A stretch of 64,000 nucleotides of DNA from Macrostomum lignano (taxonomy: Eukaryota): NCBI GenBank assembly GCA_002269645.1, contig NIVC01001405.1, positions 1 to 64,000 on the forward strand, written 5' to 3'. The translations under genes and the position numbers were made by a program. Positions 164 through 63,101 of this stretch are shown here, piece after piece (positions within the stretch are counted from its first letter, which is position 1; each line of letters opens with the position of its first letter). The notes under the pieces were generated by a model, which worked only from the letters and a program-made list of their open reading frames with translations, ran no database searches and was not told the origin of the DNA.

Positions 164-2051
164 TGCTGGACCGGACGCAGCGCGTCACTGTTCTGCTCGG
201 TATCGATCGAGTCTTGATTGCAACACACTTGAAGCCCTTGCTGCACTTGCGAGATTTGCAGTCACCAGGAGCCCTCTTTGTGCACCTGGCCACCCGTCGG
301 TATTTCTTGTAGGTCCTCGTGATAACACGTGTCACACTTCTGCACTTACACTTCCGGATGTAGCTTCCAAGATCAGACAGATTCAAGCGTCTAAGACGGG
401 AGCTGCCCAGGGCGACGGCTCGACGGATGAAGCTCAGCACCTTGTTGACTTTTCGGCTGTTCAAAGTGATGACACGGCCATTGCCTCTGGAAAGAGCCTG
501 GTACTCTTTGTGGTAATTTCTTCCGCAAAGTCTTCCCGTGACAATAAACACCATCTGCAGGTTCTTGTTGTCGATGACTCTGCGTACCTACATGTATAGT
601 TGAACAAAAATTATATATTTTCAGATTTGCGTATATAGTTTTCCAAAAGACATGCACCATTGCAAAATCATTTTACCTTTTTCTGCAACCTGTAATCTTT
701 AGCGCTGGCGTCGGTAAACACGTAGATCACGGAGCCGCGCTTAACCTTTCTGGCTGCGGCCAGAATGCCGCGCATCGCTAACTCTGGACAGTCGCCGCCG
801 CCTCGAGCCCTCAGGCGTCTCACTGCTGATACTATTGATCCCGCCTTCGTGCTGACTGTCAGCGGCCCGACCTAAATGATAAGCAAAAATAGTGAATCAT
901 GAAAGCACATCTAAGATGGGCTTAAAACATTATATCCAGGCTTTAACTTGTGTGGCGCTGCTTGGAAAACATATCTCGTAAGAAAGGAGGTCGTCAATTT
1001 TAAAGAAGCAGAACTCTAAAACCGAGAATCACTTAACAATCATTTTTCACCACATTCCCTAGCGACTTAGAAGGGGCAGAGAAGCCGTCCAGGCGCAGCC
1101 AAATTAGTTTAGGATTTGAGCACAAAAACAGCCTGTCAACTTAAGCTCATAAAGTGGAGCCCGGTAACCAAAAATGATGCGTTGTTCTGCTCACAGTGAC
1201 ACCAGGAAGCTGGGTTTGGCAAAAATGCGACAAAAATTTGACTTGGGATCGGGGAGAACAAGCAAGGACATAATTAGGGACTTTAAGAGCTTAAGTTAAT
1301 ATAAGTCACTAATCATCCCCTTGGTTGTTCTTCCCTATCCCAAAACCAATTTTTGTCGCATTTTTGCCAAATATAGCTTCCTAGTGTCACTGTGAGCAGA
1401 ACGACGCATAATTTGTGTACATAGGTTACTCGGGCTCCACTTTATGAGCTTAAGTTGACAGGCCCTTTGTCTGGGAATTTTCCCCCATGAGGACCAAGCT
1501 CTGCAATTCACAGATTCTTTACACTACCTGACGATGTGAAAGTAAGGGCCACTGGCCACCCTGTGAGAGTGTACTTGGCTGCGTATCCGTGTGCGTAGTC
1601 AAGGGTCAGTGGAATGGACTCGAGGCTGCTTAAAACCGGCATTAAATTTGCCATCAAAGCTCAAACTTAGTAAACTTTAAATAGATTTTGAGAGAGCTGA
1701 GTCTTTTCAGATATTTTGTCACTGAATTACTTTCAAAACTCCAGCGTCTTACCTTAGGATCATTAAATGGAGCGACAACAAACCGACTGACTGTGCCTCT
1801 GTTAGCCTTCACAATCTTAATTATGTTGCTCTGAATGCTGCGAATCACTCGGCCCATGCTTCCGGTTGTATCAATCACGAACGCCATGTCAACAGCGGAG
1901 CCTCTTGCTGCGGATTTCGCCGCCTTCGATTTGACTGCCCGATTGCAGGAGCATCGCTTCTGACGCCTGCGCACCCGGCGACGCACAGTCTTTGTTTGAT
2001 AGACAACTCGGCACCGCGAGCCCGAGCGGCACTTCATGGTGCTGCACAGGT
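164..2051 (-). CDS. Divergent seventh vWA domain (three exons) of the giant gene
   Basis: Exons 2051-1753 (DMAFVIDTTGSM...FVVAPFNDPK), 871-677 (VGP...GGGDCPELAMRGI...VIYVFTDASAKDY) and 587-164 (LQMVFIVTG...). These are hemicentin/VWA7-type vWA motifs. A perfect GTAAGT donor follows 164, so the gene continues out of the window. Confidence 0.85.
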
Positions 2052-2483
2052 CTGTTGGAAAAGTCACAAGAAAGGGTGTCGAATGTTTTTACGGTGAGTC
2101 TATTTCTTACTGAAAATTCTGGACGATCTGACTTGAAAATCCGAAATATCGCCATGACGGCGACTCATTCTCACAGTAGGATAAAAAAGAACGGTTTTAC
2201 AATACGATGCTTACTAACTAACATTTCAAGCGATTTCAAGAACCTATTTATAACGGATACTTAACGTAACAGACCTTGATTTAAAGGCACATATCTGTCT
2301 CAGCAATTTCAACTTTTTAAGAAATATTTCAGAAGATGAAATTCAAAGAGTATTTAAATATTACTGTTATTCCTGCTTTGGAAAGGTAAATTGTTGAACG
2401 TGTTGTGATTAGGAAGGTTTTAGAAATATTTTAGAAGTATTTATATCGCATTCAAAGCGCCAAGTAGTCTTGATTTGGAGGGC

Positions 2484-2523
<40 letters not shown>

Positions 2524-5500
2524 ATACATGAAAAGATCTGATTTGTGGATGTTAAATCCTAAAGTTGAGTCCTTTCATTAATTCCACCGTGTAGAGACCT
2601 GCCGAAAAGGACAATTTAGAGTAGACTAAGTAGAGTAGACTAAGTTTAGAGTAGACTAAGACTCAGTAACCAATACAGGGATTAGCACCTCGGTCATTCG
2701 TGAAATTTTTGCTCAAAAGTAATTGTTTCACTCTATAAAAAATAGATTTTGTTGTCCTAATTCGCCTCGAAGCTTACTTTTCCTGGGCTGACATTTAGCC
2801 GACTTGAAAACTCGCACTCGACGCCCAATTCGACGCCTTTTCGTCCGAATCACGCAGCGACGCCCGCGACCGCATCTGATTCTGGCACACAGAGCTGCAA
2901 TTTTGGTTGAAGTGTGCACTTTCTATTTGGCTTCAACAACGGCAGCTTATTTTACAGAAACGTGCAAATCTTACCACTCGGCGGCACTCTAACGCAGGCC
3001 GGTTTGTAGGCCATTCTACCAGCAAAGCGCCGTCTTCTCATCACGCACTTCTTGCCTCTGCCGCACCTGACCGCCTTGCAGCCAGCTGAATTGCGTAATA
3101 AACGAAAAGACTCTCCTGAACATGTGATGAAAGAAGAATGAAAGAAGTGATGGATAAAAAGTTACTTACTTTTTTTCGGGGCTACAAATGCACACCGGCT
3201 GACCCTGGATTGCAAGCGTTTTAAGGAGGCGTTTAGTTTCGCCTTCATCATGTTGTAACTTCTTGAAAGTTTCTTCAAAGCGGCGGCGTATCTTGCTTTC
3301 TCGGCCTTTCGTGCACCGGTCGTGGCTCGCGTCGCCTTGCATCTGTAGCGAATCTCCACGTACTTCAGCGTACCAACGCAAGGGTCGCCAAAGACGCTAT
3401 TGCTAGCTGAAAGTCGGCACGACTGCCTGTTCTGACAAGAGCTTCTTATACGCGAACTGGCTGTACGAGCTGAACAAGAGGTGGTGCGTCTGGGTCCCGA
3501 GTGCAGTACTTATTGGATACGCGGCCGTAGAATCCGGAAACAATGTCGATCGTAGTACCTCGCGGGCAGCTGACGGTGCCAGTTTTATGCTCGCAGAAGC
3601 GGCTCACTCGTTTGGCTGAAAGCAATTTTTCTGATGACTTTTTATCGCATTTTTACGAAAATCATAAATCCTGTTTGGCTCACCTGATAGGCGAGGTTTC
3701 ATGTTTCTTAAAAATAGTTTGTGACGTCGAGCTTCGGCTGCTCGTCTAGCGTTGAACCAGCGGGTGGCGCGAACCAATCGAGCGCTGTAAGCTGCTCGTG
3801 CGGATGATCTAACGCGGGCATCGTATCGGTATTTCTTCAGACAACTCATGCCTCGAGTGCACCGGAAAGTTCCACAGGATACTATAATCAAGGTGAAGTA
3901 GCTTTTAAACCTTGCTTTGCGCTATAAAAGGGACTCAAGTGACTCAAAACAGCATCCATTAAACTCACCTCCAACGCTAACTGCTTTCTTGCATTTGCCG
4001 CCTATACGTTTATATCCTCGACGGCACCTTTTCGAGTACCTCACGCACCTGCCCTTCACGCGTCTGTATCCTCGACGACATTTGGATGTAGAACGCTTAA
4101 CGCACTTTACGGAATTTACATACGAGTACTTTGCTGTAAATCGAGGAACTCTGCGACACCTGCACTTCTCGCGTCTCGATACGAACGTCGACAGACCGTC
4201 ACGGTTCAAGCCTCTCAGCGTACTGGCGCCGTGTTTCAGAGCGCGACTCACGAAGCTCATCACTCGGCTAGCCCGAGTTCTGCTCATCTTGATCCAAGCG
4301 CCTCGAGTCGATCGAGACAAACTGCGGTACGAGTTGCGTCTTCCGCACAGATTTCCGGTTATGAGGAAGTTCAGCTGAGCGTTCTTTCTTCGAGCCAGCG
4401 ATCGGACGTTGCTCTCCTTTCTGCAGTCATGAAAATTGAGTTATAATATTTTTTCAGCTGATATCTTGGTATTGGTAGCAAAAAAGCAAAATTAACTTAA
4501 TCAACACATGCCATGTCTGCTCACCGTCTGTCTCGAGCTGACGGACTCGCATCGGTGAACACGTACACAATTGAGTTCTTCTTTACTCTGGTCAGCGCTT
4601 CGTATATTCCTGAGAAGCCGAACTCGGCGCAGTCGCCTCCGCCAGATGCGCGCATTGCGTTCACTGCTCTGATGAGAGAGTTCACGGAGCTGCGAGATCG
4701 CGCACGAGTCGCCGTCACTGGACCAACTTTCGGATCGCCGTACGGCACAAGCACGAATTTGTTTACCTGAAATGGCCAGGTAGCGTTTCGTTTGCCATGT
4801 TAGAAAATTGGTCTTCTTTATTTAGGGCTCTGAAATTTAGATTGAAAACCACTTACGATGCGCGACTTAGCGTTCGCATTGATAACCTCGCGGATCTTGG
4901 CCTTGATCGCGCGGATCACCGATCCCATGCTGCCGGTCACGTCGACCACGAATGCCATGTCGATGGCGTTCTTTTTGGACGGTTTCTTGCCAGTCTTGGC
5001 TCCGATGCAGCTGCACTTCTTAGTGTAGCCAGCCACACGCTTGCCGACTTGGACTCTCGAGCGAATGCGCCTTGACTTCATTCTGCGCGGGCAGCGAACT
5101 GCAACCGATTGCAGTAAGCAGTTTCAATTTTACTCGGTTGCGTACGCACATATTTAAATAAATTTAATTCGAGCCATTTAGCAGTCAATCATTTCTCACC
5201 TCTGATGCACTTTCTGCCATATCGTCGAAAGTATTTTCCACAACGTTCTGAAATAGTAAAAGTTGTAATACAAGCTAGTTTAAAAAAACGTGCTCCATAA
5301 TTCAGTGGTTATACACTCGTAAAGCAACGATTACAATCCAATGAAACGGCAAATATGGCCATAATAAGTAATTATTGACCCTGAAGTTGATGTTTTGAAA
5401 GAATTTAATTTGAAGTAAAAAATTGGCTCTTATCCAGACTGTACGAGCAAACACCTTTATTCTTCCCCTTCTCAAAAGAAAAGAAGATAATGCTCAGGGA

Positions 5501-8500
5501 TGTCTCTGGTTTTAGGCGTTGGCGCAGTAATCTACCGGCTTGACGAGCATCGCTAGTGGCTAACCGCAGTTTGTATGAGTAGATGTTTGGGGTGGTGTTG
5601 CGCGCTATGGTAGTTGTTGCATGTGTGGTTGTGTGTAGGTACGGGCCTGGCCCTGTGCGAGTGGTTGGCGCAATAGATTTTTTCTTCCTCTTAGCTGTGT
5701 CAACTTGCTTGTGAATCTTATTTAAATGTGTTATTTTATACCACATCTTTCGAGCGTATTAACTTTATACAAATTATATTTCGATGGGCTTCGTGCTGGC
5801 TTGCGTCTCATTTTCAGATGTTTGGCAATAAATTGTATCAGCTATTTATGTTAATCACTGTTACAGACTTGCAGATCTTTCATTGCAAGATTAAGAATTG
5901 ATTTTCGGCTCACTAAGTATTTCACTAGTCAAATAAGCTGGCTTTACAAAAATCAGCAACTGCGAGCGCACAACAGAGAGTCCCAAAGCCGACTTTCGAG
6001 TAGTGGAGCCAAGGAAAGTCCCAACCCAAATTTTTACACCTTGAGACATCGTTTACCAAAAATGCAGGACAATTTCAACAACTCTCACGAAATACGAGCG
6101 TACAAAAGTTTACAGTTTAAGTTTTGTGTATTGTGAGGCATACTGAAGCCCTACCATCTGCCTTCAATTGTTGTGAGATGACTGTCGCTTTGATTGGCGG
6201 AGTTTTTCAGAGACCCTATGGTTCGACCAAACGAACCATAAAGTAACTAATAAAGTTGCCGTCAGTACGCTCGTAAATTAGTAAATTATGAGTTTCGTTT
6301 ACTGTTTCTAAAATACCAGCTAGAAAAAATTGTCTGTGTCATTGAAATTACAAAAAATCTCTGTACACGAAGTAGTCGAACTTTTCACGGAATTAATCAA
6401 TCGTTCTTTCTATAAAATCCAATTTTACGGAGCATTAAGTGGGGTCCACATTGATACGGAGTTTCTATTTATGAGAGTCACAGGAAAGGTTGAAGTCTTA
6501 CTAGGAAACACTTTTGGCAAATTACTTGATTCCATTAAAAACTCAATACTTTACAAAACGATGAACATGTAAACACGGTACAAATGTCTAAAGATACTCA
6601 CTGGAGCTCCTGCGCACGCATCTGACACGACGGCGCCGACCAGACCGAACTGTCTGGAATCCTGGCGGGCACCTTCGACGTCCTCGACTGCCGCTCGAAC
6701 TGCTGCCGCCAGTCCGGGCAGCCCCGCGCCTCACGCACCTGCCCTTCACGCGTCTATATCCTCGACGGCACCTTCTCGAGTGCCTCACACACTTGCCCTT
6801 CACGCGTCTGTATCCTCGACGGCACCTTCTCGAGTACCTCACGCACTTGCCCTTCACGCGTCTGTATCCTCGACGGCAACTTCTCGAGTACCTCATGCAC
6901 TTGCCCTTCACGCGTCTGTATCCTCGACGGCACCTTCTCGAGTACCTCACACACCTGCCCTTCACGCGTCTGTATCCCCGACGGCATCTTCTCGAGTACC
7001 TCACACACTTGCCCTTCACGCGTCTGTATCCTCGACGGCACCTTCTCGAGTACCTCACACACTTGCCCTTCACGCGTCTGTATCCTCGACGGCACCTTCT
7101 CGAGTACCTCACACACTTGCCCTTCACGCGCCTATATCCTCGACGGCACCTTCTCGAGTACCTTACACACCTGCCCTTCACGCGTCTGTATCCTCGACGG
7201 CACCTTCTCGAGTACCTCACGCACCTGCCCTTCACGCGTCTGTATCCTCGACGGCACCTTCTCGAGTACCTCACGCACCTGCCCTTCACGCGTCTGTATC
7301 CTCGACGGCACCTTCTCGAGTACCTCACACACTTGCCCTTCACGCGTCTGTATCCTCGACGGCACCTTCTCGAGTACCTCACGCACCTGCCCTTCACGCG
7401 TCTGTATCCTCGACGGCACCTTCTAGAGTACCTCACGCACCTGCCCTTCATGCGTCTGTATCCTCGACGGCACCTTCTCGAGTACCTCACACACCTGCCC
7501 TTCACGCGTCTGTATCCTCGACGGCACCTTCTCGAGTACCTCACGCACCTGCCCTTCACGCGTCTGTATCCTCGACGGCACCTTCTCGAGTACCTCACAC
7601 ACTTGCCCTTCACGCGTCTGTATCCTCGACGGCACCTTCTAGAGTACCTCACACACCTGCCCTTCACGCGTCTGTATCCTCGACGGCATCTTCTCGAGTA
7701 CCTTACACACCTGCCCTTCACGCGTCTGTATCCTCGACGGCACCTTCTCGAGTACCTCACGCACCTGCCCTTCACGCGTCTGTATCCTCGACGACATTTG
7801 GATGTAGAACGCTTAACGCACTTTACAGAATTTACATACGAGTACTTTGCTGTAAATCGAGGAACTCTGCGACACCTGCACTTCTCGCGTCTCGATACGA
7901 ACGTCGACAGACCGTCACGGTTCAAGCCTCTCAGCGTACTGGCGCCGTGTTTCAGAGCGCGACTCACGAAGCTCATCACTCGGCTAGCCCGAGTTCTGCT
8001 CATCTTGATCCAAGCACCTCGAGTCGATCGAGACAAACCGCGGTACGAGTTGCGTCTTCCGCACAGATTTCCGGTTATGAGGAAGTTCAGCTGAGCGTTC
8101 TTTCTTCGAGCCAGCGATCGGACGTTGCTCTCCTTTCTGGAGTCATGAAAATTGAGTTATAATATTTTTTCAGCTGATATCTTGGTATTGGTAGCAAAAA
8201 AGCAAAATTAACTTAATCAACACATGCCATGTCTGCTCACCGTCTGTCTCGAGCTGACGGACTCGCATCGGTGAACACGTACACAATTGAGTTCTTCTTT
8301 ACTCTGGTCAGCGCTTCGTATATTCCTGAGAAGCCGAACTCGGCGCAGTCGCCTCCGCCAGATGCGCGCATTGCGTTCACTGCTCTGATGAGAGAGTTCA
8401 CGGAGCTGCGAGATCGCGCACGAGTCGCCGTCACTGGACCAACTTTCGGATCGCCGTACGGCACAAGCACGAATTTGTTTACCTGAAATGGCCAGGTAGC

Positions 8501-14500: not shown

Positions 14501-17500
14501 CACGCGTTTGTATCCTCGACGACACCTTCTCAAGTACTTCACACACCTGCCCTTCACGCGCCTATATCCTCGACGACACCTTCTCGAGTACCTCACACAC
14601 CTGCCCTTCACGCGTCTATATCCTCGACGGCACCTTATCGAGTACCTTACACACCTGCCCTTCACGCGTCTATATCCTCGACGACACCTTCTCGAAATCT
14701 TCACACACCTGCCCTTCACACGTCTGTATCCTCGACGACATTTGGATGTAGAACGCTTAACGCACTTTACGGAATTTACATACGAGTACTTTGCTGTAAA
14801 TCGAGGAACTCTGCGACACCTGCACTTCTCGCGTCTCGATACGAACGTCGACAGACCGTCACGGTTCAAGCCTCTCAGCGTACTGGCGCCGTGTTTCAGA
14901 GCCCGACTCACGAAGCTCATCACTCGGCTAGTCCGAGTTCTGCTCATCTTGATCCAAGCGCCTCGAGTCGATCGAGACAAACTGCGGTACGACTTGCGTC
15001 TTCCGCACAGATTTCCGGTTATGAGGAAGTTCAGCTGAGCGTTCTTTCTTCGAGCCAGCGATCGGACGTTGCTCTCCTTTCTGGAGTCATGAAAATTGAG
15101 TTATAATATTTTTTCAGCTGATATCTTGGTATTGGTAGCAAAAAAGCAAAATTAACTTAATCAACACATGCCATGTCTGCTCACCGTCTGTCTCGAGCTG
15201 ACGGACTCGCATCGGTGAACACGTACACAATTGAGTTCTTCTTTACTCTGGTCAGCGCTTCGTATATTCCTGAGAAGCCGAACTCGGCGCAGTCACCTCC
15301 GCCAGATGCGCGCATTGCGTTCACTGCTCTGATGAGAGAGTTCACGGAGCTGCGAGATCGCGCACGAGTCGCCGTCACTGGACCAACTTTCGGATCGCCG
15401 TACGGCACAAGCACGAATTTGTTTACCTGAAATGGCCAGGTAGCGTTTCGTTTGCCACGTTAGAAAATTGGTCTTCTTTATTTAGGGCTCTGAAATTTAG
15501 ATTGAAAACCACTTACGATGCGCGACTTAGCGTTCGCATTGATGACCTCGCGGATCTTGGCCTTGATCGCGCGGATCACCGATCCCATGCTGCCGGTCAC
15601 GTCGACCACGAATGCCATGTCGATGGCGTTCTTTTTGGACGGTTTCTTGCCAGTCTTGGCTCCGATGCAGCTGCACTTCTTAGTGTAGCCAGCCACACGC
15701 TTGCCGACTTGGACTCTCGAGCGAATGCGCCTTGACTTCATTCTGCGCGGGCAGCGAACTGCAACCGATTGCACGAAGCAGTTTCAATTTTACTCGGTTG
15801 CGTACGCACATATTTAAATAAATTTAATTCGAGCCATCTAGCAGTCAATCATTTCTCACCTCTGATGCACTTTCTGCCATATCGTCGAAAGTATTTTCCA
15901 CAACGTTCTGAAATAGTAAAAGTTCCAATAGTTACAAAATTATGCTACATGATTCATGAATCAGTTTTTATAATCCAGCAGTTTCAATTACAATCCAATT
16001 TAAAGACAAATGTAGCCAAGTAAGGAATGATTGAGCCTGAAGTTAATTTATAAAAAGAATATAAGTTGAAGTAGAAAATTGGGTGCAACTATTTGCTGCA
16101 CCTGTGAGGATTGCTCGAACTAGATTTTTCAGATGGTTTTACCAACTGTAACTCATTCAGTCTTCCTCAGATAGCAACAACAACAAAATACGTCAGTGGA
16201 TAGAGCGTCCTTAACAAAACAAAAGGAGTAGATAATGAGACGAGATGTCTATGGTTTTAGGCATTTGCACATCAAAACAAACATCGCTAGTTGTAACCGG
16301 GGTTAGTGAGGGTTAGGCGTTAGGGGTGGTGAAACGTGTTGTGGTTGTTGCGCGTTGGGGTGGGTTTCTGCGCGGCTTGTTTATGCAATAGAATTTCTCT
16401 CTTGTTTTAAGCAATGGAATCTTAGTTGAATGTGTTACTAAGATGTGTTACTATATACGCTCGTAGTAGGACAATGTTAAAAGTTTCACAAAATACATAG
16501 GTTTAAATTTTAAGTTTTGTACATTGTGAGGCATCCTGAGACGCTACCACGTGCCCTTGATGGCTATGAGACGTCTTGTGCCAGCAGTGCATGGATAAAT
16601 TCTGAATTTTGTATACTGTATTTGAAGCAGAAAAACTTTTCAATATCATAAAAATTATTAAAAATTAGGTCCAAATTTTAACGAAATCAATATTAATTTT
16701 TATCTGTTTGCTACCACAAATTTGCAACAAAATAAATTTAGTGCCTGCATTTATACAGCGTTTCGATTAATAGGAGTCATAGACAGGAAAGCTTGAGCCT
16801 TACTTGGGAAAGATTTTCGCAGATAATTTGACTGGGTTTCAGACTCAAGAATTTACAAAATCATGTACATGTAAACTCAGTACAATCGTCTGTAGACACT
16901 CACTGGAGCTTCTGCGCACGCATCTGACAAGACCGCGCCGACCAGACCGAACTGTCCGGAATCCTGGCGGGCACCTTCGACGTCCTCGACTGCCGCTCGA
17001 ACTGCTGCCGCCAGTCCGGGCAGCACTGCGCCTCACGCACCTGCGCACCGTCACGTACTTGTAGGTGTTCACCGTGCGCCGAGTTCGGGTACAGCGGCAG
17101 CGTTTGCGGTGTCGCACGAATCTGGCCAGACCGCTGCGGTTCAGCTGTCGCATGCGTCTGGCTCCGAAAGCCAAAGCGCTGCTGATGAACGACAGAACTC
17201 GATTGGACATTCGTTTGTTCATTGCGGTCCACGAGCCGCTGCTTTTCTTTGCGAGGTTTTTGTACGAACTGCGACGTCCGCAGAGGTTTCCAGAGATGAG
17301 GAAGTTCACCTGGATTTTTCTGCTGCTGATCAGTTTCTGCAAAGCTGCTTGGCTCCTGAGTAACAAACCAAAGGAAAAACTTACATTTAATATGAATTTA
17401 CGGAGAAACAATGAATTTAAAACGATAATTAACATTACTACGCTCCTACATGCAATAGCTAAGCGGGGTCAGAGTAGTTCAGTGGTAAACGCGACTGTAG

Positions 17501-20500
17501 TTCAGTGTGATTTCACATTAATTCAAAACTCCTTTACAAAATTAGTACACATGCTTGTTTTAGCTGGTTTTCAAGAGGGCCGATCCACAACCAACCGAAC
17601 GTGTACATTCCTAACGAGTAAGTAGACGAGTAACGCTGGACACATCACGTGAGTTCGTGCCCGTGTACGTATTTGTGTACGGGTCAGTGCCCACGGGTCA
17701 GCAGAATGTATGTAACTAATTTTCCCCTCCATAGCTGCAATTCCACTGACGCCCCAATGCCTCGGTGTCTTTTTGTACAGCAAGCTAACAAGCTGCACAT
17801 CTTACTACATCTTACTACTCTAGCGAAATACTTACACCTTGTCCTTTCTCGATGAGCTGGCGTCGGTGAACACGTACATGATAGAGCCCGGCTTCAGCAC
17901 CGACGCTGCCTGGTACATGCCTGAGCGACTCAGCTCGGGACAGTCGCCACCGCCAGATGCTCTCAATCGGTTCACTGCACTCAGTAGTCGCCGTCTCGAT
18001 CTCGCATTGTTTGCTCGACTCACGACTCGAGGACCGACCACTGGATCAGCGAATGGGACCAACACAAATTTGTCCACCTAAAATATCAATGGACACAAAT
18101 ATCAGTAATTGTCTTTACTATCGATAAAAATAAGAAATGCAATCGAAGCTGCATGCTTACCACTCCGAAGCGTGAGTTCGCATCGATAACCTCTCTGATC
18201 TTGGCCTTGATTCCGCTGATGACGCGGCTCATGCTGCCAGTCACGTCGACAACAAACGCCATGTCAAGAGCTCGCTTCGTGACCTTGGCTGGCGGCTTGC
18301 CGTGGAGACAGCGGCACTTCTTCACGAAGCCGCCGACTGCTCTCTTACCAGCGCGCTTCTTCTGTCGAGTTGTCTGCATACGATAGCCTTTAGGACACCT
18401 TCGAGACACTGCACGACGAACACACCGTCCTTTCAGCAGTCGATAGCCTCGGCGGCATTTCTTTGACGATTTTCTGATGCATCTCACCGCGTTCACATAT
18501 GCGTACTTGGGCGTGATTCGAGGAACTCTACGACACCTGCACTTCTCGCGCCTCGATACGAACGTCGACAGACCATCGCGGTTCAAGCCTCTCAACGCAG
18601 TGGCGCCGTGTTTCAGAGCGCGACTCACGAAGCTCATCACTCGGCTAGCCCGAGTTCTGCTCATCTTGATCCAAGCGCCTCGAGTCGATCGAGACAAACT
18701 GCGGTACGAGTTGCGTCTTCCGCACAGATTTCCGGTTATGAGGAAGTTCAGCTGAGCGTTCTTGCGTCGAGCCAGCGATCGGACATTGCTCTCCTTTCTG
18801 CAGACAAGAAATTTTACTGGGTGGTTTGCGTATCCGGCGTTTGCGCACACTTCCGTCCTCTTTTGGCTACCCCAACCCCTTCGCCTGTGTTCGGGAGTCG
18901 TTATTTTTGCTCAACGCCTGGTTTGGAGGCCAGTTTGCCTTATCCAGATTTGATTGTGAGGCTAGTAGTACTATAAATTTAATCGAATCATACACGCGCA
19001 GTCGCACATACAGTGCATACTACTTATTCAATGCGATAAGTGTAGCATCGTAAAGACATGCGAACTTCTTTTAGACTGTAAATGTGCCCTCTATCATAGT
19101 ATGCTACTATGTTCTGTGAAACTAATCTCTGTTCGGGAGTAAAAAGGCAGCCTGCGTCATAAGGCCCTAGCTTAGGCTGGTGATGAGAGAGTAGAGAGTT
19201 ACGGCTAGAGTTGGATTAAACCTGCCACTTGTTAATTACTGGTTTCGGGGTGGAAACTAAAACAGGTTGTCGAGAGTATGTTTTTACGTTTAATTTTTTT
19301 GTTTAATTTTTTGTCGCTGTTCTAGCTTCCAAAGTTCGAACTATGCATTTCTGATTTTTTCTAAATTATCCCGATACTGAATGATCTACCCACTGTCACG
19401 CGCGAGCTTCCCTGCGCTTGGACCCGGCCTATTCCTATGACAATAAGTAATAGTTGCAGGAGAGTTTCGGGCAACCTAGCGCTGAGTCTGATTCAAGCGC
19501 GCGGTTATTGTATGCAGGCACGCTCTCACAAAGTGCCCTAACTTTCTAGTAGCCCAGACGAGCTCTGTGCCTTAGGGTTGGCCCCCAGTAGGTGTGAGTG
19601 GCACGACAACCCCGCTGCCAAATTTTTGTGCACATACCCCAAATTAATAATGCCGCGGCGCACAAAATCGAACCGGAGGGGGGGGGGGCGGTGGCGGGAC
19701 AGTCAGAAGCGTTTACAGCAGAGGCTCCATCGGTCTGTCCCTCTTCACAGTGCACATTTCCAGCGCTACCAATTTTCTACCTTCGAAACAACTTTGGTAA
19801 GTTATGCGCTGCATTGTTCCGCAGGAGCTCAAAGAATCTGCACGGAGTAAAGCTTTTACATTCGGATAGACAGACAACACTATTATATACACTGAAGAGT
19901 ACAATTCTGTATAAAATTCTACATCACCGTAAGCAGATAGAGAAATTTGAAACAAATTTAAAACAAAAAATGTTGAAGTGACAGAATGCGAATAACACAC
20001 GTATTTCTTGTGGCATGCGCATCGATTGCGCTAATCACTGTCACGTATTTCGTCTCCCGGAAACAAAAATGCACCGCTTCGGAGTCCTATGCCTATCGGC
20101 CCGAAACATTGACCGCTTCAAAACTAAATCTCATTGGAAGCAAAAGCCTGACCGCTGAAGAGCCGCTGCCAACGCTGAGCAATGTCGCAATGATCAAAAA
20201 CTGTCCTCCATTCAACGAGCTCCGCAGCGTCGACTTCACGAACCCCAGCCTGAAGCACCGGCTATGTCAGGAGACGCCGGCCTACCAGTTGGTCAGGGCC
20301 AAGTTTCCCCTGTGCGAGCTGAACAGGAACTTACCGCAGCAGGTGTACACCATTGTCAGACAAGGGTCTCCTCTGGCCAATGTGACCCGAGCGATGGGCG
20401 GCCCTTTAATGCCGATATTCACCTTCGGCAAGGAGGACATGATTTCCGGACTAATTCTAAGACACAATAAATGGGAAAGTAGCGCAATTCGGACGATGCT

Positions 20501-23500
20501 CGACCTGTTAAAGAAGTTTCCGACAAACTCTGCGACTTTCCTGGATATTGGCAGCAACCTTGGCATCTACAGTCTGCAGGCCAGAGAGCTTGGGTATCCC
20601 GTGGTGGCCATCGATGCAAACATTCGCGTACTTGTCAGGCTGCAAATGTCAGCGAAGCGGCTGAACTTGCTTGACGACAAGCTGAAGCTCTTCTGGGGCT
20701 TCATCAGTGACGACGTGGCGGTCAAGCGGATCAGCTGGGACACTGACGGCATGAATTGCAATGTTGGAGGCGGCTCAGGCGGATTGGCTGACTGAAAAAG
20801 GCAGGTCACGAAGTCAATCGAGGACACAATTCCTCTGACCACTGTCAAGGCGGACGAGCTTCGAGCGCACATCGGCACCAAGAATGTGGTCATCAAGATG
20901 GACATCGAGTCTGGCGAGCACCTGTTCATGAAGACTGGCGAGAAGCTGTTTAGCGAACTCAACATCATGGCGCTGCAGATGGAGTTCTGGCGGAAAAAAC
21001 TCAGTAACGGACCGCAATTGTCCAAACATTACGAGTTCGTGACGCGCTTCATGACCTCGAGAAATTTCTCCCTGCCGTCCATGAAGAGCTTCAAAATTCA
21101 GAACATCTCTACATTCAGCGAATGGGACGGACTGTGGGTCAGAAACGACTTTTTGGCTCAAATTGCTAAAAAAGGTTGATGCAACTTGCAGTGCTTGGAG
21201 ATCACTGGGTCATACGCACTGGATCTCACTTTCACAAGATACGAACTAATAAATAGACTTTTAGAAGCGAAACTGGGGTTTTAAGCTAGAAGAATTCTCA
21301 TATAAAATAGCATTTCTGATGTGCATCTTGGGTTTAATTAAGATGGTTTTACCGCAAATTAATTTTTTTACGCCCTTTTGTGTTCCTCGCCCTCGCGGCT
21401 CAGTTTTTTTTGCGACACTCCCTCGTTTTTTTTTTAAATTACAATTTTTAAATTACTTGCAATTATTTTTATCGACTATAGGAGATTATTGTAATGGGCC
21501 TAGGCCTATTTTATTGCTCAACTAGACATACACGTAACCCTAACTACGAGTACTTTAACTTGATTTTTTACTGATTGCGATTTGCGTCTGCAAAGTATAA
21601 GTATTTTTATAACCAGGCCTACTCTTGAACTATAGGAGAGAAACCCAACATTGCTTTGTCATATTGGGTATACGCCAAGGCTAAGTATATTCCGTAATGT
21701 CCAGTAGTGAACTATGAGCGTAATAACCAATGTTGCGCTGAAGATTTTTGGCTACTTTATTTTGCTTCCTAAACTTATACTTAAATACCAATCGCACCAA
21801 AATATAGGATGTCTCCATTGTACAGGATGTTTCTTGCACCGACATCTAATTGGAAACTAAAGTTAATGTCCTACTGGGTAAGCGACAAAAATCTGACACA
21901 ATCTGGATAAAAAAGTAACTTCTACATGCAACCGATTCAGAGATACAGACAGTTTTAATGTTCGGCCTTCAAGTATTTTCCACGATTTGCAAGTGTTGCC
22001 TTCTCCTAGTCCTTGATCTGCAGTTGATCCTCTCGATTGGGCTTCAGGGTCTTCAGGGTCCCAGGTTCCAGGAAACGAAAGCCCCCCAGACATCAGAGGC
22101 GTCAATTAAAGAACATGCTTTCAACCACGGCAGTACAAAAGAGAAGGAGTTGCCGGTTCCTTATAAGGAGCAGTTAACTGTTCAAAGGCCAACTAAATTG
22201 CTTAGAAGCCTTGTAGAATTGCCGCACTCTTGGCTAATTTCTACTGCGTGGGAATCTATGGGCCCCGTCAGATGAAATCTGAGGTATTTCCACTCATGAA
22301 CTGATTATTAATTGCTTTTTCGTGCTCAACTATATTCGGAAGTGACTATTCTTTAGGTACTGATTGAAAATTACTAAGGACCATATCATAGATTCGTAAT
22401 ATTTCTCCGCTGATATCTTGGTATTGCAGCAAAAGACTGCATGCTACACATGCCATGTCTGCTCACCGTCTGTCTCGAGCTGACGGACTCGCATCGGTGA
22501 ACACGTACACAATTGAGTTCTTCTTTACTCTGGTCAGCGCTTCGTATATTCCCGAGAAGCCGAACTCGGCGCAGTCGCCTCCGCCAGATGCGCGCATTGC
22601 GTTCACTGCTCTGATGAGGGAGTTCACGGAGCTGCGAGATCGCGCACGAGTCGCCGTCACTGGACCAACTTTCGGATCGCCGTACGGCACAAGCACGAAT
22701 TTGTTTACCTGAAATGGCCAGGTAGCGTTTCGTTTGTCATGTTAGAAAATTGGACTTCTTTATTTAGGGCTCTGAAATTTAGATTGAAAACCACTTACGA
22801 TGCGCGACTTAGCGTTCGCATTGATAACCTCGCGGATCTTGGCCTTGATCGCGCGGATCACCGATCCCATGCTGCCGGTCACGTCGACCACGAATGCCAT
22901 GTCGATGGCGTTCTTTTTGGACGGTTTCTTGCCAGTCTTGGCTCCGATGCAGCTGCACTTTCTCACTGATCCGGAGACTTTGCGCCCTGTGTAGACTTTC
23001 TGTCGGACATATCGCTTAGCGTAACCACTGGGACATTTTGCTGGAAGGTCAGATTTTGCATAAGCTGGTATCTTAAGATGCTCTCTGCATTTCACAGCAC
23101 TTTCGAACATTTATTTAATGAGTGCTTACTTCGGACGCAACTTTTTCCTACTCGTCGAAAACGTTTTGGGCATCTCATTCTGACACAGAATCGTCCAGAT
23201 TTTTTTGTGCCTTTCGGACAATTCCCTGAAAATTTTGGAATATACTCGTAGAAAGCAAATTGCATTGAATAATTTATATCTCATAGTTCTGAGATTCGAA
23301 GTTTAGCTTTTTTTACTTACGAACGCATAGCTTTCCTTTCTTCTTGTATCCAGCTGTACAGTGAGCTGAAAGTGAATAATTGAATGACTAATTGTTATTG
23401 CAGCAGTTCCCGCTGCCTAAAGTTTTGCAGTTGTACAATTGTTAAATGGAACTTACTTCGCACGCACATGCGTCGCCTTCTCACGAAACCGGAGGGACAT

Positions 23501-25764
23501 GAGTTGTCTGGAGGAGTAAGAGATAAGTCACTTTAGTTCCTTTGTTTTGGTTTAGAAGTAACGCTTAGATATGTCTTGTCGAGTTTGCTACTTACTAATG
23601 CAGTACTGGCCGACCTTTTTGTAGCCAGAGGGGCAAATCAACCGCCTGCAAAGCTTGCCGTGTCGCACCCAGCCAGATGGGCAGGTTTTAACGAATCTTG
23701 TCCTGACGCACATGCGACCAGCTCGCCTGTAGCCACTTGGACACCGAACGAAAACGCATCGACTGCCGCGCCTTACATAGCCTCCGGGGCAGCGGATCCT
23801 CCGACACGTGGATCCCATCCGAGTGTAGCCGCTGGGGCATCGACGACGCTTTTTATAGCGATAAACGCATGCGCTACCGCGCTTCACGTAGTTCTTTGGA
23901 CAAGCGATCCTCACGCAGGAGTAGCCGCGTTTATAGCGTCTGATCTTGCGGAAACCTTTAGCGCAGCTGCCGCTGTTCATTGTGCACTGGATTCTAGATT
24001 AGGTGTAGATAGATTAATTACAGATGTGATGTATTTCTGTTCCAAATTTTCTGAGGCGACAAAGTCCCAACAATGTCACTTACCTATAGCCACGACGCGT
24101 TCGGATCCGTTTCATCTTGTAGCCAACAGGGCACCTGGATACCACAACGACACAACGAACGCGACCGTCTCTTGTTCGCCTTGGAATCCGTTCACTAGGA
24201 CAGGTAAGGACACAGCGCTTACCCCGCCGCTTGTAGTTGCGCGGGCAAGATTTTAATATGCGAATACACTTGCTGCCTTTTCTCTTATAACCAGATCGAC
24301 ATCTGAAATGTTGCAACAATGGTATTGAGAGTTAAAAGCAACTGATATTTTACTTTTAGAGGCAACCAGATGGATTCAGTTAAATTCTTACCTTGCCCGA
24401 CCGCTGCGATAGCGCACACACCGAGCACCAACGCGGTAGTAGTTCTTGGGGCATCTGGTCCGGATTCGGACGCAAGTGAAGCCTTTCAGAGTGAAGCCTT
24501 TCCGGCAGCTCTTGCGGCAGCTGTTGCCAATTTTGGTGAACCCGGCAGGACAGCGGACCAGGTGGCAGCGGCCCTTGTAGACACGGTAGCCGGCGCTGCA
24601 GGCCAGTCCAAGCCGCTGGACGCATCGGCTGCCGTAGCGGGTGAAGCCGCGAGGGCAGGCCATCCGGCGAGCAACAACGCGTCTGTAACGGACGCACTTT
24701 GCTCCCCGACGGACGTACGGCTTCGGACAGTAGACCCGGAAGCACATGTTGCCTCTGCGCTTGTAGCCAGCAGGGCAGCGAGTGTACAGCCGCCTGGTGC
24801 AGGAGACGAAGCGAGTGGCAGCCAGCTTGCAGCGCGAGTAGCTGGATCGCCTAGCGACCCGTCTGACCCGCGCTCTGCTGGTCACTCGAGACCGCCGCAC
24901 CACCGAGCTGGTCCTGCGTATCCGCCGGCTGACGCGAGTGACGCGATATCGAATCGCCGCTCGTCGCACTCGCCGGGCCTTCAAGCGGCGGGCCCATCTG
25001 ACCCGGGCTTTGCGGCCGCGCATGGCTGCGGCCCTGCGAGTCCGACTGTAGGACAGGCCTTTCAGCTTAACCATGCTGCTGCGCATGCGCTTGTAGTAGC
25101 TGCGCATGCTTCTGCTGCAAGATGGGACGATGCGCATTTGGTTCGCTTGTTCACTCTCCGAGGTTTTAACGGCTACTTAGGCAGCGATTTCCTGATTTTT
25201 CTCGATTTCACCTTTTTACAAAAAAATAAAAAGGTGACCCCTTATAAATGTGAACTCGAGAAATTGTGACTGCCTGATACGCGACGACCGAGGCGACAAT
25301 TTTTGCAATGATAGCTGTTTTCTCTACGATAATAAAATAAAAATAATACTAATAGTAGTAATAATAATAACGATTAATTACACCTGCCCAAATTGGGCCA
25401 GATTCGCAACCGACAGCACAGCCTCAGCTATTGCGCGGCGCATCTGAAGGCTGTGTAATGGCTGTTTAATCCAAAGACCCTCAATTACCCCAGCTAATGC
25501 TGGCACCCATTTTACAGCTGGGTAAACTGAAGCGATGCAGAGTTAAGTTTCTTGCTCAAGGACACAAAGTTCAGGACTCGAACCCCCGACCTATAAGTCG
25601 TGAGTCCGACGCTGTAAACCACTAGGCTAAAATCCCTTGAAAAGGTTATATCTACAAAATCAACCTTAGCTTTTAGCTCACCTTTTGCCTTGACGAGCAT
25701 CGGCAAGCTCGCAGAAGACAGTCACAAATAGAAGAGCACTGAGGAGTAGCAGTGCGAGACGCAT
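164..25764 (-). CDS. Giant secreted Arg/Lys/Cys-rich multi-vWA protein (about 3,900 codons in window, 3' end beyond the left edge)
   Basis: Exons spliced by hand with phase-compatible junctions: 25764-25682, 25314-25274 (tentative, GC donor), 25172-24392, 24302-24084, 23993-23596, 23507-23457, 23225-23130, 23040-22799, 22708-22467, 18797-18161, 18077-17836, 17355-16904, 15758-15517, 15426-15185, 15080-14032, 12528-12287, 12196-11955, 11850-10317, 8814-8573, 8482-8241, 8136-6602, 5098-4857, 4766-4525, 4420-3969, 3881-3684, 3615-3170, 3085-2975, 2894-2778, 2051-1753, 871-677, 587-164. All other introns are GT-AG. The frame is broken only at 12038-12040 (TGA), ~10691 (-1) and ~3496 (-1). Confidence 0.75.
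1131..1463. mobile_element. Fold-back/MITE-like element in an intron
   Basis: About 135-bp imperfect inverted arms. GCCTGTCAACTTAAGCTCATAAAGTGGAGCCC at 1131 is the exact reverse complement of the sequence ending at 1463. No coding capacity; TSD not resolved. Confidence 0.7.
2485..2516. repeat. (TA)n microsatellite
   Basis: Visible TA run in an intron. Confidence 0.9.
2778..3881 (-). CDS. Follistatin-N-like modules and a SUEL/rhamnose-galactose-binding lectin domain (exons of the giant gene)
   Basis: Exon 3615-3170 reads CEHKTGTVSCPRGTTIDIVSGFYGR..KYC[-1]..TTSCS..IRSSCQNRQSCRLSASNSVFGDPCVGTLKYVEIRYRC, the SUEL consensus. Flanking small exons give C-x4-C-x5-C...C motifs (CKAVRCGRGKKC, CARIRCGRGRRC, CSTMKCRSGSRC). 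Confidence 0.8.
3969..5098 (-). CDS. vWA module copy (3 exons, about 2 CRRGY repeats)
   Basis: Exons 5098-4857, 4766-4525 and 4420-3969 carry DMAFVVDVTGSM, GGGDCAE and VYVFTDAS. The last exon ends in phase 1 and joins the exon starting at 3881. Confidence 0.85.
6602..8814 (-). CDS. vWA module copy with about 20 x 18-aa Arg/Cys repeats
   Basis: Exons 8814-8573, 8482-8241 and 8136-6602 are fully open; the ORF track shows the 482-aa portion. Confidence 0.85.
6731..7794 (-). repeat. 54-bp coding tandem repeat (CRRGYRRVKGRCVRYSRR), about 20 units
   Basis: Unit TCACGCACCTGCCCTTCACGCGTCTGTATCCTCGACGGCACCTTCTCGAGTACC; many variants are synonymous or conservative (R/K) in the minus-strand frame. Confidence 0.95.
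10317..12528 (-). CDS. vWA module copy carrying a GGA>TGA stop (12038-12040) and a 1-bp deletion (~10691)
   Basis: Near-identical to 6602-8814, but exon 2 reads TTCTCATGA instead of TTCTCAGGA and the repeat exon is 1534 rather than 1535 bp (plus-strand GTATCCCG versus GTATCCCCG). Confidence 0.75.
10446..11508 (-). repeat. 54-bp coding tandem repeat, about 20 units
   Basis: Same unit and same order of variants as 6731-7794. Confidence 0.95.
14032..15758 (-). CDS. vWA module copy with about 11 x 18-aa repeats
   Basis: Exons 15758-15517, 15426-15185 and 15080-14032 are open and in phase. Confidence 0.85.
14161..14740 (-). repeat. 54-bp coding tandem repeat, about 11 units, more diverged
   Basis: Includes variant units (KISRR, YSIRC, KYLRR, KFSRR). 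Confidence 0.9.
16904..18797 (-). CDS. C-terminal part of vWA 1 plus a diverged vWA 2 (three exons)
   Basis: Exons 18797-18161 (...ALDMAFVVDVTGSMSRV), 18077-17836 (FVLVPFADP...GGGDCPE...MYVFTDAS) and 17355-16904; junction phases 0, 2 and 1 are all compatible. Confidence 0.85.
19986..21179 (+). CDS. Intronless FkbM-family SAM-dependent methyltransferase with N-terminal membrane anchor; one in-frame TGA at 20793-20795
   Basis: N-terminal hydrophobic segment (VFLVACASIALITVTYFV), motif I FLDIGSNLG, VVAIDA and the FkbM-type KMDIESGE. ORFs 19986-20795 and 20886-21179 are in the same frame, separated only by GAC-TGA-AAA. Confidence 0.8.
22467..23040 (-). CDS. First vWA domain, N-terminal two exons
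   Basis: Exons 23040-22799 and 22708-22467 are near-identical to the tandem copies. The phase-2 donor matches the acceptor at 18797. Confidence 0.8.
23130..25172 (-). CDS. Arg-rich region and CPxGY..C repeat exons of the giant gene
   Basis: Five phase-compatible exons encode a protamine-like R/S/A stretch followed by many CP(S/K/A)G(Y/F)xRxGxxC units. Confidence 0.8.
25350..25627 (-). mobile_element. tRNA-derived CORE-type SINE in intron 1
   Basis: The minus strand has an A-box-like CCTAGTGGTT and a B-box GGTTCGAGTCC. These are followed by GTGTCCTTGAGCAAGAAACTTAAC...CAGTTTACCCAGCTGTAAAATGGG, which resembles the MIR CORE domain, and an (ATT)-like tail. A second partial copy lies at 56580-56688. 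Confidence 0.7.
25682..25764 (-). CDS. First exon: signal peptide
   Basis: MRLALLLLSALLFVTVFCELADA-RQGK followed by an AG|GTGAG donor. Confidence 0.75.
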
Positions 25765-28125: not shown

Positions 28126-29415
28126 GTTTACGTCCTTCGATTTGAGTAGCTCGTAAGTCCTGGCTCAATCGTGCAGAATTGCTTATTTCTATGGCAAAAC
28201 ATCATTAACACACGCAGAATGAAACGAGAATGTGATTCAAGAACTCAAACTTGTGGGTCTACGGCAAAAGCACACGACGCACTCCTGAAAAGCTCAAGCA
28301 GACAGATACTATAATATCACCGCAAACTGCATTAGCGAGTAGGAATTGTCAGTGTTTGAGCACTGAATGCACCAAATGTACGTGAGTATCTCAGTTTCTG
28401 AACTTCAATTTGCAAATGGAGCCAGCATTGTGTCTTTAGGGCTGATGTACAGGTCTGTCTAGATAAAGTTTAAAGAAAGATTTATTATTGGCCATGAAAA
28501 AAAATCGATTCGGCAAAAGAAACATTGAGAAGGCAGGGAAAACTGAAATTTTGCCAGCACTTTGCTTGCCAGCCTCATCCGGTAGAAGTTTCTCTTTAGT
28601 CTGCAGTTCAAAAGTATGGTTACACTAATTTAATGCTAGCTACTTTGCTTCCGTCCATTCTGCTTGCTGCCTGTAAAAGTTACCTGTTTTCTATCAGCTC
28701 TGAATTATTGATCCGTTAAAAGCTGTACATACTACTCAATTCAATAAATTCGTTTTAAACTGAAGTAAGAAAGTCCCAAAGTCCAAAGTTGCATTGAATC
28801 TGAATAATATAGCACTGACTTGGTCGCCTTGAGCAGAGAAGGGGGTCTTCACTGAAAGGTAATTTTCAAGCAAAAAATGTCTTACATTACAGCGGAACCG
28901 CACTTCTGTACACGGATACGAAAGTCAGTTAGTTATCTTCTGCCGGAGACGCAATGGACAGAACCGGTCTGTGCTGTACTGAGCGATGTACAATTTATGA
29001 TTTAAAGTACTGCGATCGGGAAAGGCGGACAGGGCATCAAATAAAAGCAGCCGTCTCCGGGAAAAATAACACAGGAACTCGGGCAGAGATACGAAAGCAA
29101 AAAAATGTTCGCACGAGAATTCAAACCTGAGAAAAATGTCAATAGATCTTGGCCGCTTGCTCTGACTGGAAATTGCTGGGGTCAGTCATTCTCGCAGCAG
29201 ATTGGGTCAACGAATATTGGCGGCGTGGGGGCGATGATGTGCAGAAAGGGCCAGCTGGAGTGCGACGGAGCAGTGGCGGGGCAAGATGACATCGATGCTT
29301 CCCATGATCCCATGCAGGCTTATCCCATGCTTGCATTCAATCAGAATCAAAACTTATACCGCTTAATCTCATCGCATAAATGCTTGTCCGATCTGATCTC
29401 ACTTTTTATCATCTT

Positions 29416-29650
29416 CATCCCATCCCAACCCATCCCATCCCATCCCATCCCATCCCATCCCATCCCATCCCATCCCATCCCATCCAATCCCATCCCAACC
29501 CATCCCATCCCATCCCATCCCATCCCATCCCATCCCATCCCATTCCATCCCATCCCATCCCATCCCATCCCATCCCATCCCATCCCATCCCATTCCATCC
29601 CATCCCATCCCATCCCATTCCATCCCATTCCATCCCATCCCATCCCATTC
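29416..29650. repeat. (CCATC)n pentanucleotide satellite
   Basis: Direct inspection; it starts just after a splice donor. Confidence 0.95.

Positions 29651-62697: not shown

Positions 62698-63101
<404 letters not shown>

Follow-up and report, generated by a model that had tools for sequence, protein, structure and literature searches.

A stretch of 64,000 nucleotides of Macrostomum lignano DNA (contig NIVC01001405.1 of assembly GCA_002269645.1, positions 1 to 64,000; hereafter the window) was analysed, and positions 164-25764 of its minus strand were found to represent the first ~72% of one gene, which very probably encodes a single secreted, polycationic protein with multiple vWA domains. 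In region 1-26,000 an animal-type gene organisation was observed, with numerous short open segments on the minus strand that either contain vWA motifs or have a high content of Arg, Lys, and Cys. Chaining of these segments by splice-site and codon-usage scoring, dynamic programming, and subsequent manual curation resulted in 35 exons with 3,973 codons, all borders being GT-AG and all phases compatible. Every strong exon was recovered by the dynamic-programming gene finder; ~30 tiny exons that it placed in long introns are considered spurious, and the curated chain stays open without them. A preliminary description, made from the sequence alone, had proposed one minus-strand chain that begins with a signal peptide at 25764, reaches a donor at 164, and continues out of the window. 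Both ends are confirmed by the UniProt fragments A0A1I8GGM8 and A0A1I8JAD7, the latter of which adds ~1,540 residues outside the window, while the proposed numbers of about 31 exons and about 3,900 codons were replaced by those given above.

The chain starts with the ATG at 25764, which is the first after an upstream stop, and the product begins with MRLALLLLSALLFVTVFC. Exon 1 (25682-25764; exon coordinates refer to the minus strand throughout) comprises this ATG and the sequence MRLALLLLSALLFVTVFCELADA, judged by inspection to be a signal peptide of the textbook type, and its junction to 25114 is identical in A0A1I8GGM8. Exon 2 (24392-25114) encodes an Arg-rich, Cys-free stretch followed by the earliest of the two-cysteine CPxGY hairpin repeats, which also make up exons 3 (24084-24302) and 4 (23596-23993). 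Mini-exons 5 (23457-23507) and 6 (23321-23365) contain one hairpin each and mini-exon 7 (23130-23225) contains two; all three are of phase 1-1 and have counterparts in the paralogue PAA50029.1. Exon 8 (22799-23040) codes for a linker and the N-terminal third of vWA 1 (DVTGS), and exon 9 (22467-22708) for its middle (GGGDCAE, VFTDA). After an intron of 3,669 bp (18798-22466), which contains a nested pair of plus-strand open reading frames (ORFs; 19986-20795 and 20886-21179), exon 10 (18161-18797) completes vWA 1 with its C-terminal third and, after a Cys/Arg spacer, opens vWA 2 with the N-terminal third. The middle of vWA 2 is located on exon 11 (17836-18077), its end and a further spacer on exon 12 (16904-17355).

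The following 16 exons are arranged in four cassettes of four, in which a mini-exon of 48 nt is followed by two vWA exons of 242 nt each and by a long exon encoding the end of the vWA domain and an array of 18-residue units. Unit 1 (14032-15907; exons 15907-15860, 15758-15517, 15426-15185, and 15080-14032) contributes vWA 3 and an 11-copy array, unit 2 (10317-12677; exons 12677-12630, 12528-12287, 12196-11955, and 11850-10317) vWA 4 and a 20-copy array, unit 3 (6602-8963; exons 8963-8916, 8814-8573, 8482-8241, and 8136-6602) vWA 5 and a 20-copy array, and unit 4 (3969-5247; exons 5247-5200, 5098-4857, 4766-4525, and 4420-3969) vWA 6 and two repeat units. The 3' portion of unit 4 is identical to A0A1I8JAD7.

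Downstream of the cassettes, exon 29 (3684-3881) encodes a Cys module and a basic stretch that looks helical by eye, and exon 30 (3170-3615) a SUEL lectin domain (about 3571-3339) and a presumed basic helix. Exons 31 (2975-3085) and 32 (2778-2894) each carry a C..(K/R)C..G..C module. The seventh vWA domain is distributed over exon 33 (1753-2051; Cys module and N-terminal part, DTTGS ... NDPK), exon 34 (677-871; middle, GGGDCPE and VFTDA), and exon 35 (164-587; end of the domain and Cys modules). The chain leaves the window at a GTAAGT donor after 164, where A0A1I8JAD7 goes on from ...CVRSS to NLCNNIKC, and the 3' end of the gene lies beyond window position 1. The window part of the product has a mass of 461 kDa, a pI of ~11.9, and a net charge of ~+1,190. 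Due to the fact that A0A1I8JAD7 runs 1,542 residues past the window, the whole protein is estimated at ~5,500 residues with a pI near 12; the coding sequence of the whole gene amounts to ~16.5 kb. The intron that separates exon 2051-1753 from exon 871-677 contains a ~330-bp inverted repeat (1131-1463), which pairs with itself at 84% identity and may represent a foldback or miniature inverted-repeat transposable element (MITE)-like element.

The first protein search returned M. lignano UniProt fragments with up to 100% identity, and three sets of uncharacterised UniProt models tile the gene. A0A1I8GGM8 (954 aa) begins upstream of the same Met and agrees in the exon 1-2 junction and in exons 2-4, but omits the three mini-exons, including exon 5. 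A0A1I8GGX9 and A0A1I8FMU6 span cassette junctions. The donor at 164 and the seven junctions before it are confirmed by A0A1I8JAD7 (2,245 aa) and A0A1I8GDF5 (1,223 aa). Past the window, A0A1I8JAD7 has C..KC..G..C modules, KTNKASETKQKT repeats, and K/R-rich stretches that by eye appear helical, and CPxGY repeats form a block at its C-terminus; a Pfam scan of this extension revealed no further domain. Exon 10 is present as a single exon (70% identity) with the same neighbours in the Logan contigs L001-L003, which originate from either a related genome or a divergent paralogue and show 70-84% protein identity. The junction of 22467 to 18797, on which the preliminary description had staked its single chain, is supported by contig L001, where the same exons are separated by an intron of only ~100 bp, and by the spliced NCBI model of the paralogue PAA50029.1.

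Near-identical 3.7-kb modules, the piecewise coverage of the locus by database models, and the plus-strand gene inside the proposed 3.67-kb intron would also fit several tandem genes, one per vWA module. None of the modules, however, has an ATG or signal peptide of its own, the vWA domains are split over exons with phases that are sensible only within the chain, and all three UniProt fragments map to this one chain. Since exon 18797-18161 spans vWA 1 and vWA 2, one gene per module is excluded for this pair. Furthermore, a paralogue is represented by a single 11.6-kb mRNA with 3,863 codons. Separate tandem genes are therefore hardly tenable.

Cassette amplification and frame defects

The middle of the gene arose when a 3.7-kb cassette of four exons was recently duplicated in tandem. 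It forms a tandem genomic repeat (4007-14737) with a unit of 3,716 bp, introns included, whose adjacent copies are 99.3% identical (units 1-2), dropping to ~94-95% toward the copy at ~14,700-16,100. The borders of the repeat unit are located inside the 54-bp arrays that encode the 18-residue units, which points to unequal crossing-over between arrays. Every cassette is entered and left in phase 1. The exon sums of units 1-4 are 1,581, 2,066 (2,067 with the missing base, see below), 2,067, and 984 nt, and thus divisible by three for cassettes 1, 3, and 4 and, after restoration of a missing G, for cassette 2 as well. Due to the phase 1-to-1 organisation and an exon length that is a multiple of three, the copy number can change or a cassette can be skipped with the frame kept.

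In contrast to the preliminary description, according to which all exons join in frame, the chain is interrupted at three positions that had been overlooked. An in-frame TGA occurs at 12040-12038 (minus strand) in exon 12196-11955, where all four sister exons read GGA. In exon 11850-10317, a run that reads GGGG in the sister exon (6979-6976) is shortened to GGG (10693-10691, minus strand); apart from the missing base, the exon shows no substitution over 1,534 nt compared to exon 8136-6602. The SUEL exon 3615-3170 is one G short at 3498-3496 (minus strand) relative to A0A1I8JAD7, which reads through and is identical to residues 3271-3973 of our model over 703 residues except for a patch of five residues (DPDAPP against GPRRTT). 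Because A0A1I8JAD7 differs exactly there, the other assembly must contain GGGG where the window has GGG. Both one-base deficits share the minus-strand context TCGGG(G)A, which is more suggestive of a systematic error in the assembly consensus than of mutations that arose independently, and UniProt fragments of the older assembly contain other frameshifts of a like kind. The two frameshifts are most likely assembly errors in homopolymer runs, and the TGA would be another error or else a real lesion limited to one skippable cassette: unit 2 holds both the TGA and one frameshift, and skipping it (14032 to 8963) preserves the frame.

If all three defects were real, the window gene would be a decaying or non-functional copy with its function carried by paralogues. 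Three frame defects within 12 kb of coding sequence, the many paralogues of M. lignano, and the lack of copy-specific peptides among the proteomics entries listed are in agreement with this explanation. On the other hand, both indels are one-base deficits in G runs, as is typical of long-read consensus errors, and one of them does not occur in the independent model A0A1I8JAD7, which shows no other difference over 703 residues. The remaining frameshift shares its cassette with the TGA, and this cassette can be skipped in frame. Prolonged decay is disfavoured by the lack of any substitution between exon 11850-10317 and its sister over 1,534 nt. Altogether, we consider a degenerating copy quite unlikely.

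Domains and hairpin repeats

The seven vWA domains start at residues 585, 878, 1206, 1733, 2422, 3111, and 3722, and each of them is divided among two or three exons. D-x-T-G-S, GGGDC(P/A)E, and (V/I)FTDA are present in all seven copies, and spliced modules match the Pfam family VWA_4 (PF25106, hemicentin/VWA7 subtype) with E-values from 1e-34 to 1e-39. Scores of 118-136 bits were obtained for three spliced modules (gathering cut-off 27) and 128 bits for A0A1I8JAD7. Seven positions are invariant in an alignment of 29 family sequences (G87, G88, D89, E92, T115, D116, and A117), and the candidate ligands of a putative metal ion-dependent adhesion site (MIDAS)-like centre (D, T, S, D, and D) are conserved. 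For the module of vWA 1, AlphaFold predicted the alpha/beta vWA fold with a mean local confidence (pLDDT) of 84 and a global score (pTM) of 0.84. The top 50 Foldseek matches of this model (E 5e-8 to 2e-6) are almost exclusively vWA or integrin I-like domains, among them ITIH1, collagen VI alpha-3 N5, integrin beta I-like, vWF A1, CMG2, and the mussel byssus protein PTMP1, while a sequence search of the PDB gave no significant match. Thus, the seven hemicentin/VWA7-type domains of the preliminary description are confirmed, and the same applies to the SUEL lectin reported there.

A single SUEL domain is encoded by exon 30. As the window stands it is divided by the frameshift; with one base restored it matches PF02140 over positions 2-80 of 80 (69.6 bits, E 3e-19), and the independent model A0A1I8JAD7 reaches 68.9 bits. 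Conserved Cys residues as well as the YGR and GDPC motifs are present. The domain is of the galactose/rhamnose type, a putative glycan-binding module.

The product of the 3,973 codons consists of 23.6% R, 8.6% K, and 6.4% C. Of the 2,742 residues that lie outside the vWA cores, D and E make up only 25 (0.9%), whereas R and K account for 38% and C for 8.7%, in good agreement with the extreme Arg/Lys content and the near absence of acidic residues stated in the preliminary description. In the N-terminal 420 residues, the two-cysteine motif C-P-x-G-[YF]-x3-4-G-x2-C-[VI] recurs ~25 times; AlphaFold modelled these repeats as a string of beta-hairpins with no fixed global shape (local pLDDT 55-78, pTM 0.21). 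The 18-residue unit of the cassettes, CRRGYRRVKGRCVRYSRR, represents the same two-cysteine motif and occurs in 53 near-identical copies in arrays of 11, 20, 20, and 2. With the Tandem Repeats Finder (TRF), 19.7 copies of the corresponding 54-bp unit were detected at 6729-7793 (minus strand), and 19.7 and 10.8 copies in the sister arrays at 10444-11507 and 14159-14740, respectively; 52 matches of the unit were observed, with none expected by chance. Each 18-residue unit has one Cys pair, a Gly turn, a Tyr, and 8-10 Arg/Lys, and the two cysteines of a hairpin presumably form a disulfide. The 54-bp repeat also creates long plus-strand ORFs over the arrays (e.g., 6780-8162 and 6793-8094), which are antisense artefacts and not genes.

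The 53 near-identical, short, Arg-rich two-Cys units, for which beta-hairpins are predicted, and 81 R-x-[KR]-R motifs in the product raise the question of a host-defence polyprotein, in which the units would be precursors of cationic beta-hairpin antimicrobial peptides freed by proprotein convertases, and the vWA and lectin domains would target or scaffold these peptides in mucus. In size and composition the units presumably resemble tachyplesin, protegrin, arenicin, and gomesin. However, they abut without acidic pro-pieces or distinct spacers (D and E make up 0.9% outside the vWA cores), and the arrays are situated between folded vWA domains. Moreover, the cleavage motifs are not discriminating at such an Arg content, and at both ends of the protein the two-cysteine motif is heterogeneous and not peptide-like. 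A precursor of antimicrobial peptides is accordingly a doubtful and rather remote interpretation of the arrays.

Relatives and function of the product

In an exhaustive HMMER scan of 1.84 billion representative sequences, only ten proteins were found below E 1e-30, and seven of the eight with a checked source belong to M. lignano. Multi-VWA_4 proteins with CxC/CPxGY linkers appear to be a lineage-specific expansion. The other M. lignano members (A0A1I8I2M0, A0A1I8I8N4, A0A1I8JEL7, and PAA86075.1) possess two to three VWA_4 domains with CxC...CPxGY...CxC linkers, and several are basic (pI 10.5-11.8), but they are shorter or differently built; PAA86075.1, for instance, combines two VWA_4 domains with a VWD domain and a K/R/C-rich tail of 3,000 aa. 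The combination of seven vWA domains, 18-residue arrays, and SUEL occurs in none of them.

The closest counterpart discussed here is the paralogue PAA50029.1 (a partial NCBI model, BOX15_Mlig000911g8; locus NIVC01003734.1), which is spliced alike, including the three mini-exons and the equivalent of the junction of 22467 to 18797, is 58-64% identical in the CPxGY region and in vWA 1, and has the same order of CPxGY repeats, VWA_4, and SUEL. Its N-terminus (NIVC01003734.1 8263-10071) contains a ~350-residue Ala/Arg repeat (ARARARA...). Upstream of it on the same strand (NIVC01003734.1 1-2174), the 3' end of an annotated 2,210-aa gene is situated, whose RRVSRR repeats and C..KRC..G..C modules resemble the tail of the window gene. 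From these neighbours, family members with varying polycationic low-complexity parts appear to be placed in tandem.

Evidence at the protein level comes from Dataset S2 of Wunderer et al. (2019; PMC6410801), in which an unnamed 11,590-nt transcript of type 5UTR_CDS_3UTR is listed without discussion. Its product has 3,863 aa, a mass of 457 kDa, and a calculated pI of 12.13, a Pfam match to the galactose-binding lectin domain, and hemicentin-1 as best human match, and it was detected in two footprint replicates (sheets footprints_Trypsin_intact_1 and _2). The peptides NSIVYVFTDASPSR, NIVNVINVNAK, VGPVTISR, and FILVPFADPK of this entry are exactly those of PAA50029.1, and further peptides match the last vWA and the SUEL domain of the family. 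On account of this transcript and its peptides, the sister gene is transcribed into a single giant mRNA with its product in substrate-deposited material. With regard to exon structure, size, and pI (457 kDa and 12.1 versus 461 kDa and 11.9), the 3,863-aa protein is similar to the window part of the product described here, but it is encoded at another locus and has a long Ala/Arg N-terminus and different diagnostic peptides. The window gene, in turn, is distinguished by its recently amplified 18-residue arrays and its length of ~5,500 aa. An undiscussed 1,639-aa protein of pI 12.5 with two SUEL domains is present in the same footprint sheets, and basic multi-VWA_4 proteins (pI 10.5-11.8), e.g., A0A1I8I8N4, occur, likewise undiscussed, in Datasets S1 and S3 (peanut agglutinin (PNA) pull-down and tail), one of them having been recovered with PNA lectin.

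Among known systems, the adhesive protein Mlig-ap1 of the same species is most similar in kind, being giant, secreted, Cys-rich, and extremely rich in K/R, with lectin and von Willebrand-type domains, a pI above 12, and an occurrence in footprints; electrostatic action has been proposed for both. Mlig-ap1, however, is built from C-type lectin, vWD/C8/TIL, and 17 EGF-Ca modules with the KR repeats SRKPRRKNRKSRKP and KNNKRRVRKARKNN. It is further characterised by expression in adhesive gland cells and a non-adhesive phenotype upon RNA interference (RNAi). As already held by the preliminary description, the window gene is not Mlig-ap1: there is no homology, and SRKPRRKNRKSRKP, KNNKRRVRKARKNN, and KSRKVN are absent from the six frames of the window, as are the repeat peptides of Mlig-ap2. 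Neither in the window modules nor in the 3' extension did Pfam scans detect C-type lectin, vWD/C8/TIL, EGF-Ca, TSP1, or LDL domains. An orthologue of hemicentin or VWA7 was likewise rejected. The vWA domains share FVxDTTGSM, PFNDPxVGP, GGGDCPE, YVFTDASAKD, and LTGxC with hemicentin-1/VWA7, but the latter are not basic and contain one vWA followed by a PF23560 beta-sandwich and then Ig/EGF or PF25107/PF23619, whereas no PF23560, PF25107, PF23619, Ig, or EGF was found in the spliced modules or in A0A1I8JAD7. PF23560 or related modules are present in most of the listed non-Macrostomum VWA_4 matches.

Two holdfast proteins of other animals are comparable in part. PTMP1 of the mussel byssus (PDB 4cn8/4cn9; Foldseek E ~4e-7 against the vWA 1 model) is a holdfast matrix protein of tandem vWA domains and thus a precedent for vWA cross-linkers in secreted attachment material, although it is small, with two classical vWA domains and neither polycationic arrays nor a lectin, and is not a sequence homologue. 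Sea-star footprint protein 1 (Sfp1; cited in PMC6410801) is large, Cys-rich, and multi-domain with galactose-binding lectin domains, but it lacks a polycationic character and is composed of vWD, C8, EGF, and discoidin-type modules; no homology is claimed.

Literature searches (cement gland, rhabdite, hemicentin in situ, locus tag Mlig000911) revealed no description of a polycationic VWA_4-SUEL family. For the architecture of seven VWA_4 domains, two-cysteine Arg hairpin arrays, and SUEL, no published description was found, and databases hold only uncharacterised fragments. The preliminary description had called the protein undescribed, which stands insofar as no paper was found, but has to be qualified by the three uncharacterised UniProt fragments and by the listing of the paralogue's product in PMC6410801. 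The kind of molecule, a giant polycationic, Cys-rich, lectin-bearing secretion protein of flatworms, is already known from Mlig-ap1.

Considering all observations, the best reading of the gene product is an uncharacterised extracellular polycationic scaffold of the mucus or adhesive footprint material of M. lignano, which we regard as moderately probable. For the narrower assignment of this scaffold to mucus or adhesive secretions, belief outweighs doubt only slightly. The Arg-studded, disulfide-stapled hairpin arrays would bind polyanions such as sulfated or carboxylated glycans and conditioned surfaces in a multivalent manner, and tyrosines near arginines could add cation-pi cohesion. Metal-dependent protein-protein links through the seven vWA domains might form a network; vWA domains act as cross-linkers in PTMP1, collagen VI, and matrilins. 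The SUEL domain could dock on galactose-terminated glycans, a candidate being the PNA-positive Gal-beta1,3-GalNAc carried by Mlig-ap2 (PMC6410801).

Several points weigh against this scaffold interpretation. The preliminary description had suggested a glue, cement, mucus, or egg-capsule scaffold, and the presence of the paralogue in footprints gives indirect support to this idea, but no transcript, in situ, or peptide support was found for the window gene itself, and nine of its diagnostic tryptic peptides were not found among the proteomics entries listed (PMC6410801). The footprint samples also hold a vitellogenin-like protein, actin, tubulin, and ribosomal proteins, and due to these yolk-type and cytoskeletal proteins the presence in footprints is no proof of an adhesive role. 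Moreover, the tail-specific screens of the same authors selected Mlig-ap1 and Mlig-ap2 and not the VWA_4-SUEL family. Binding of metals and glycans as well as the disulfide pattern are predictions. Finally, the TGA at 12040-12038 is a substitution and not a homopolymer slip, and no other assembly covering this position was found.

The same molecule might instead serve in reproduction, as a scaffold of egg shell, cement gland, or seminal fluid. We take the Tyr-rich basic arrays to recall cross-linkable shell or cement proteins. Since the top footprint protein of the same sheets is vitellogenin-like, reproductive material contaminates the footprint samples. Literature searches, however, found no link to cement glands or prostate, and a reproductive role is considered unlikely.

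Flatworm temporary adhesion is among the few bioadhesive systems with a molecular model, which rests on Mlig-ap1 and Mlig-ap2. The occurrence of a second, unrelated giant polycationic lectin-bearing family in the footprint proteome suggests that the secreted material is more complex than this two-protein model. Starting from the scaffold interpretation, it is tempting to speculate that the window gene and its paralogues form a Macrostomum-specific family of ~half-megadalton proteins and constitute an overlooked third structural component of temporary adhesion and mucus, with SUEL docking to Mlig-ap2 and arrays binding anionic surfaces or the glycocalyx; array length would then be tuned through cassette copy number and exon skipping. 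This proposal is tentative and, at present, rather improbable. Disulfide-stapled Arg/Tyr hairpins, vWA cross-linkers, and a galactose lectin could provide a modular template for biomimetic wet adhesives or polyanion binders. With respect to annotation, the locus illustrates how near-identical cassettes and homopolymer errors split one gene into several short "VWFA domain-containing" entries.

Other features of the window

The nested plus-strand gene in the 3,669-bp intron (19986-21179) comprises ORFs of 269 aa and 97 aa with an N-terminal membrane anchor and a FLDIGSNLG...KMDIESGE pattern, for which Pfam gave only sub-threshold methyltransferase hints (Methyltransf_23, E 0.035). Due to the length of only ~100 bp of the homologous intron in L001, the segment with the nested gene looks like an insertion.

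Two retrotransposons are located in the central part of the window. A Gypsy-type long terminal repeat (LTR) element (38267-43067, plus strand) has apparently intact ORFs for gag (PNMA/Retrotrans_gag), protease, reverse transcriptase, RNase H, and integrase, with an overlap of the pol and integrase ORFs at 41727-41793. A non-LTR element of the long interspersed nuclear element (LINE) type (44761-49934, minus strand) contains an apparently intact ORF2 of 1,236 aa (endonuclease, reverse transcriptase, and RNase H), preceded by a 488-aa ORF1-like frame without Pfam match. At 60194-61499 (minus strand), two adjacent ORFs of 197 aa and 230 aa, parted by a stop, a frameshift, or a very short intron, encode a rhodopsin/Srw-like G protein-coupled receptor (7TM_GPCR_Srw, E 2e-6; 7tm_1, E 6e-6).

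Four low-complexity or microsatellite tracts give rise to long spurious ORFs on both strands. These are a PIPSH-type 15-bp repeat at 29300-29800, a long purine/pyrimidine-skewed S/L-type repeat at 34362-35795, a 42-bp Pro-rich repeat (PRLPTPDSLPQTPY) at 57523-58461, and a trinucleotide run of ~450 bp at 62560-63160.

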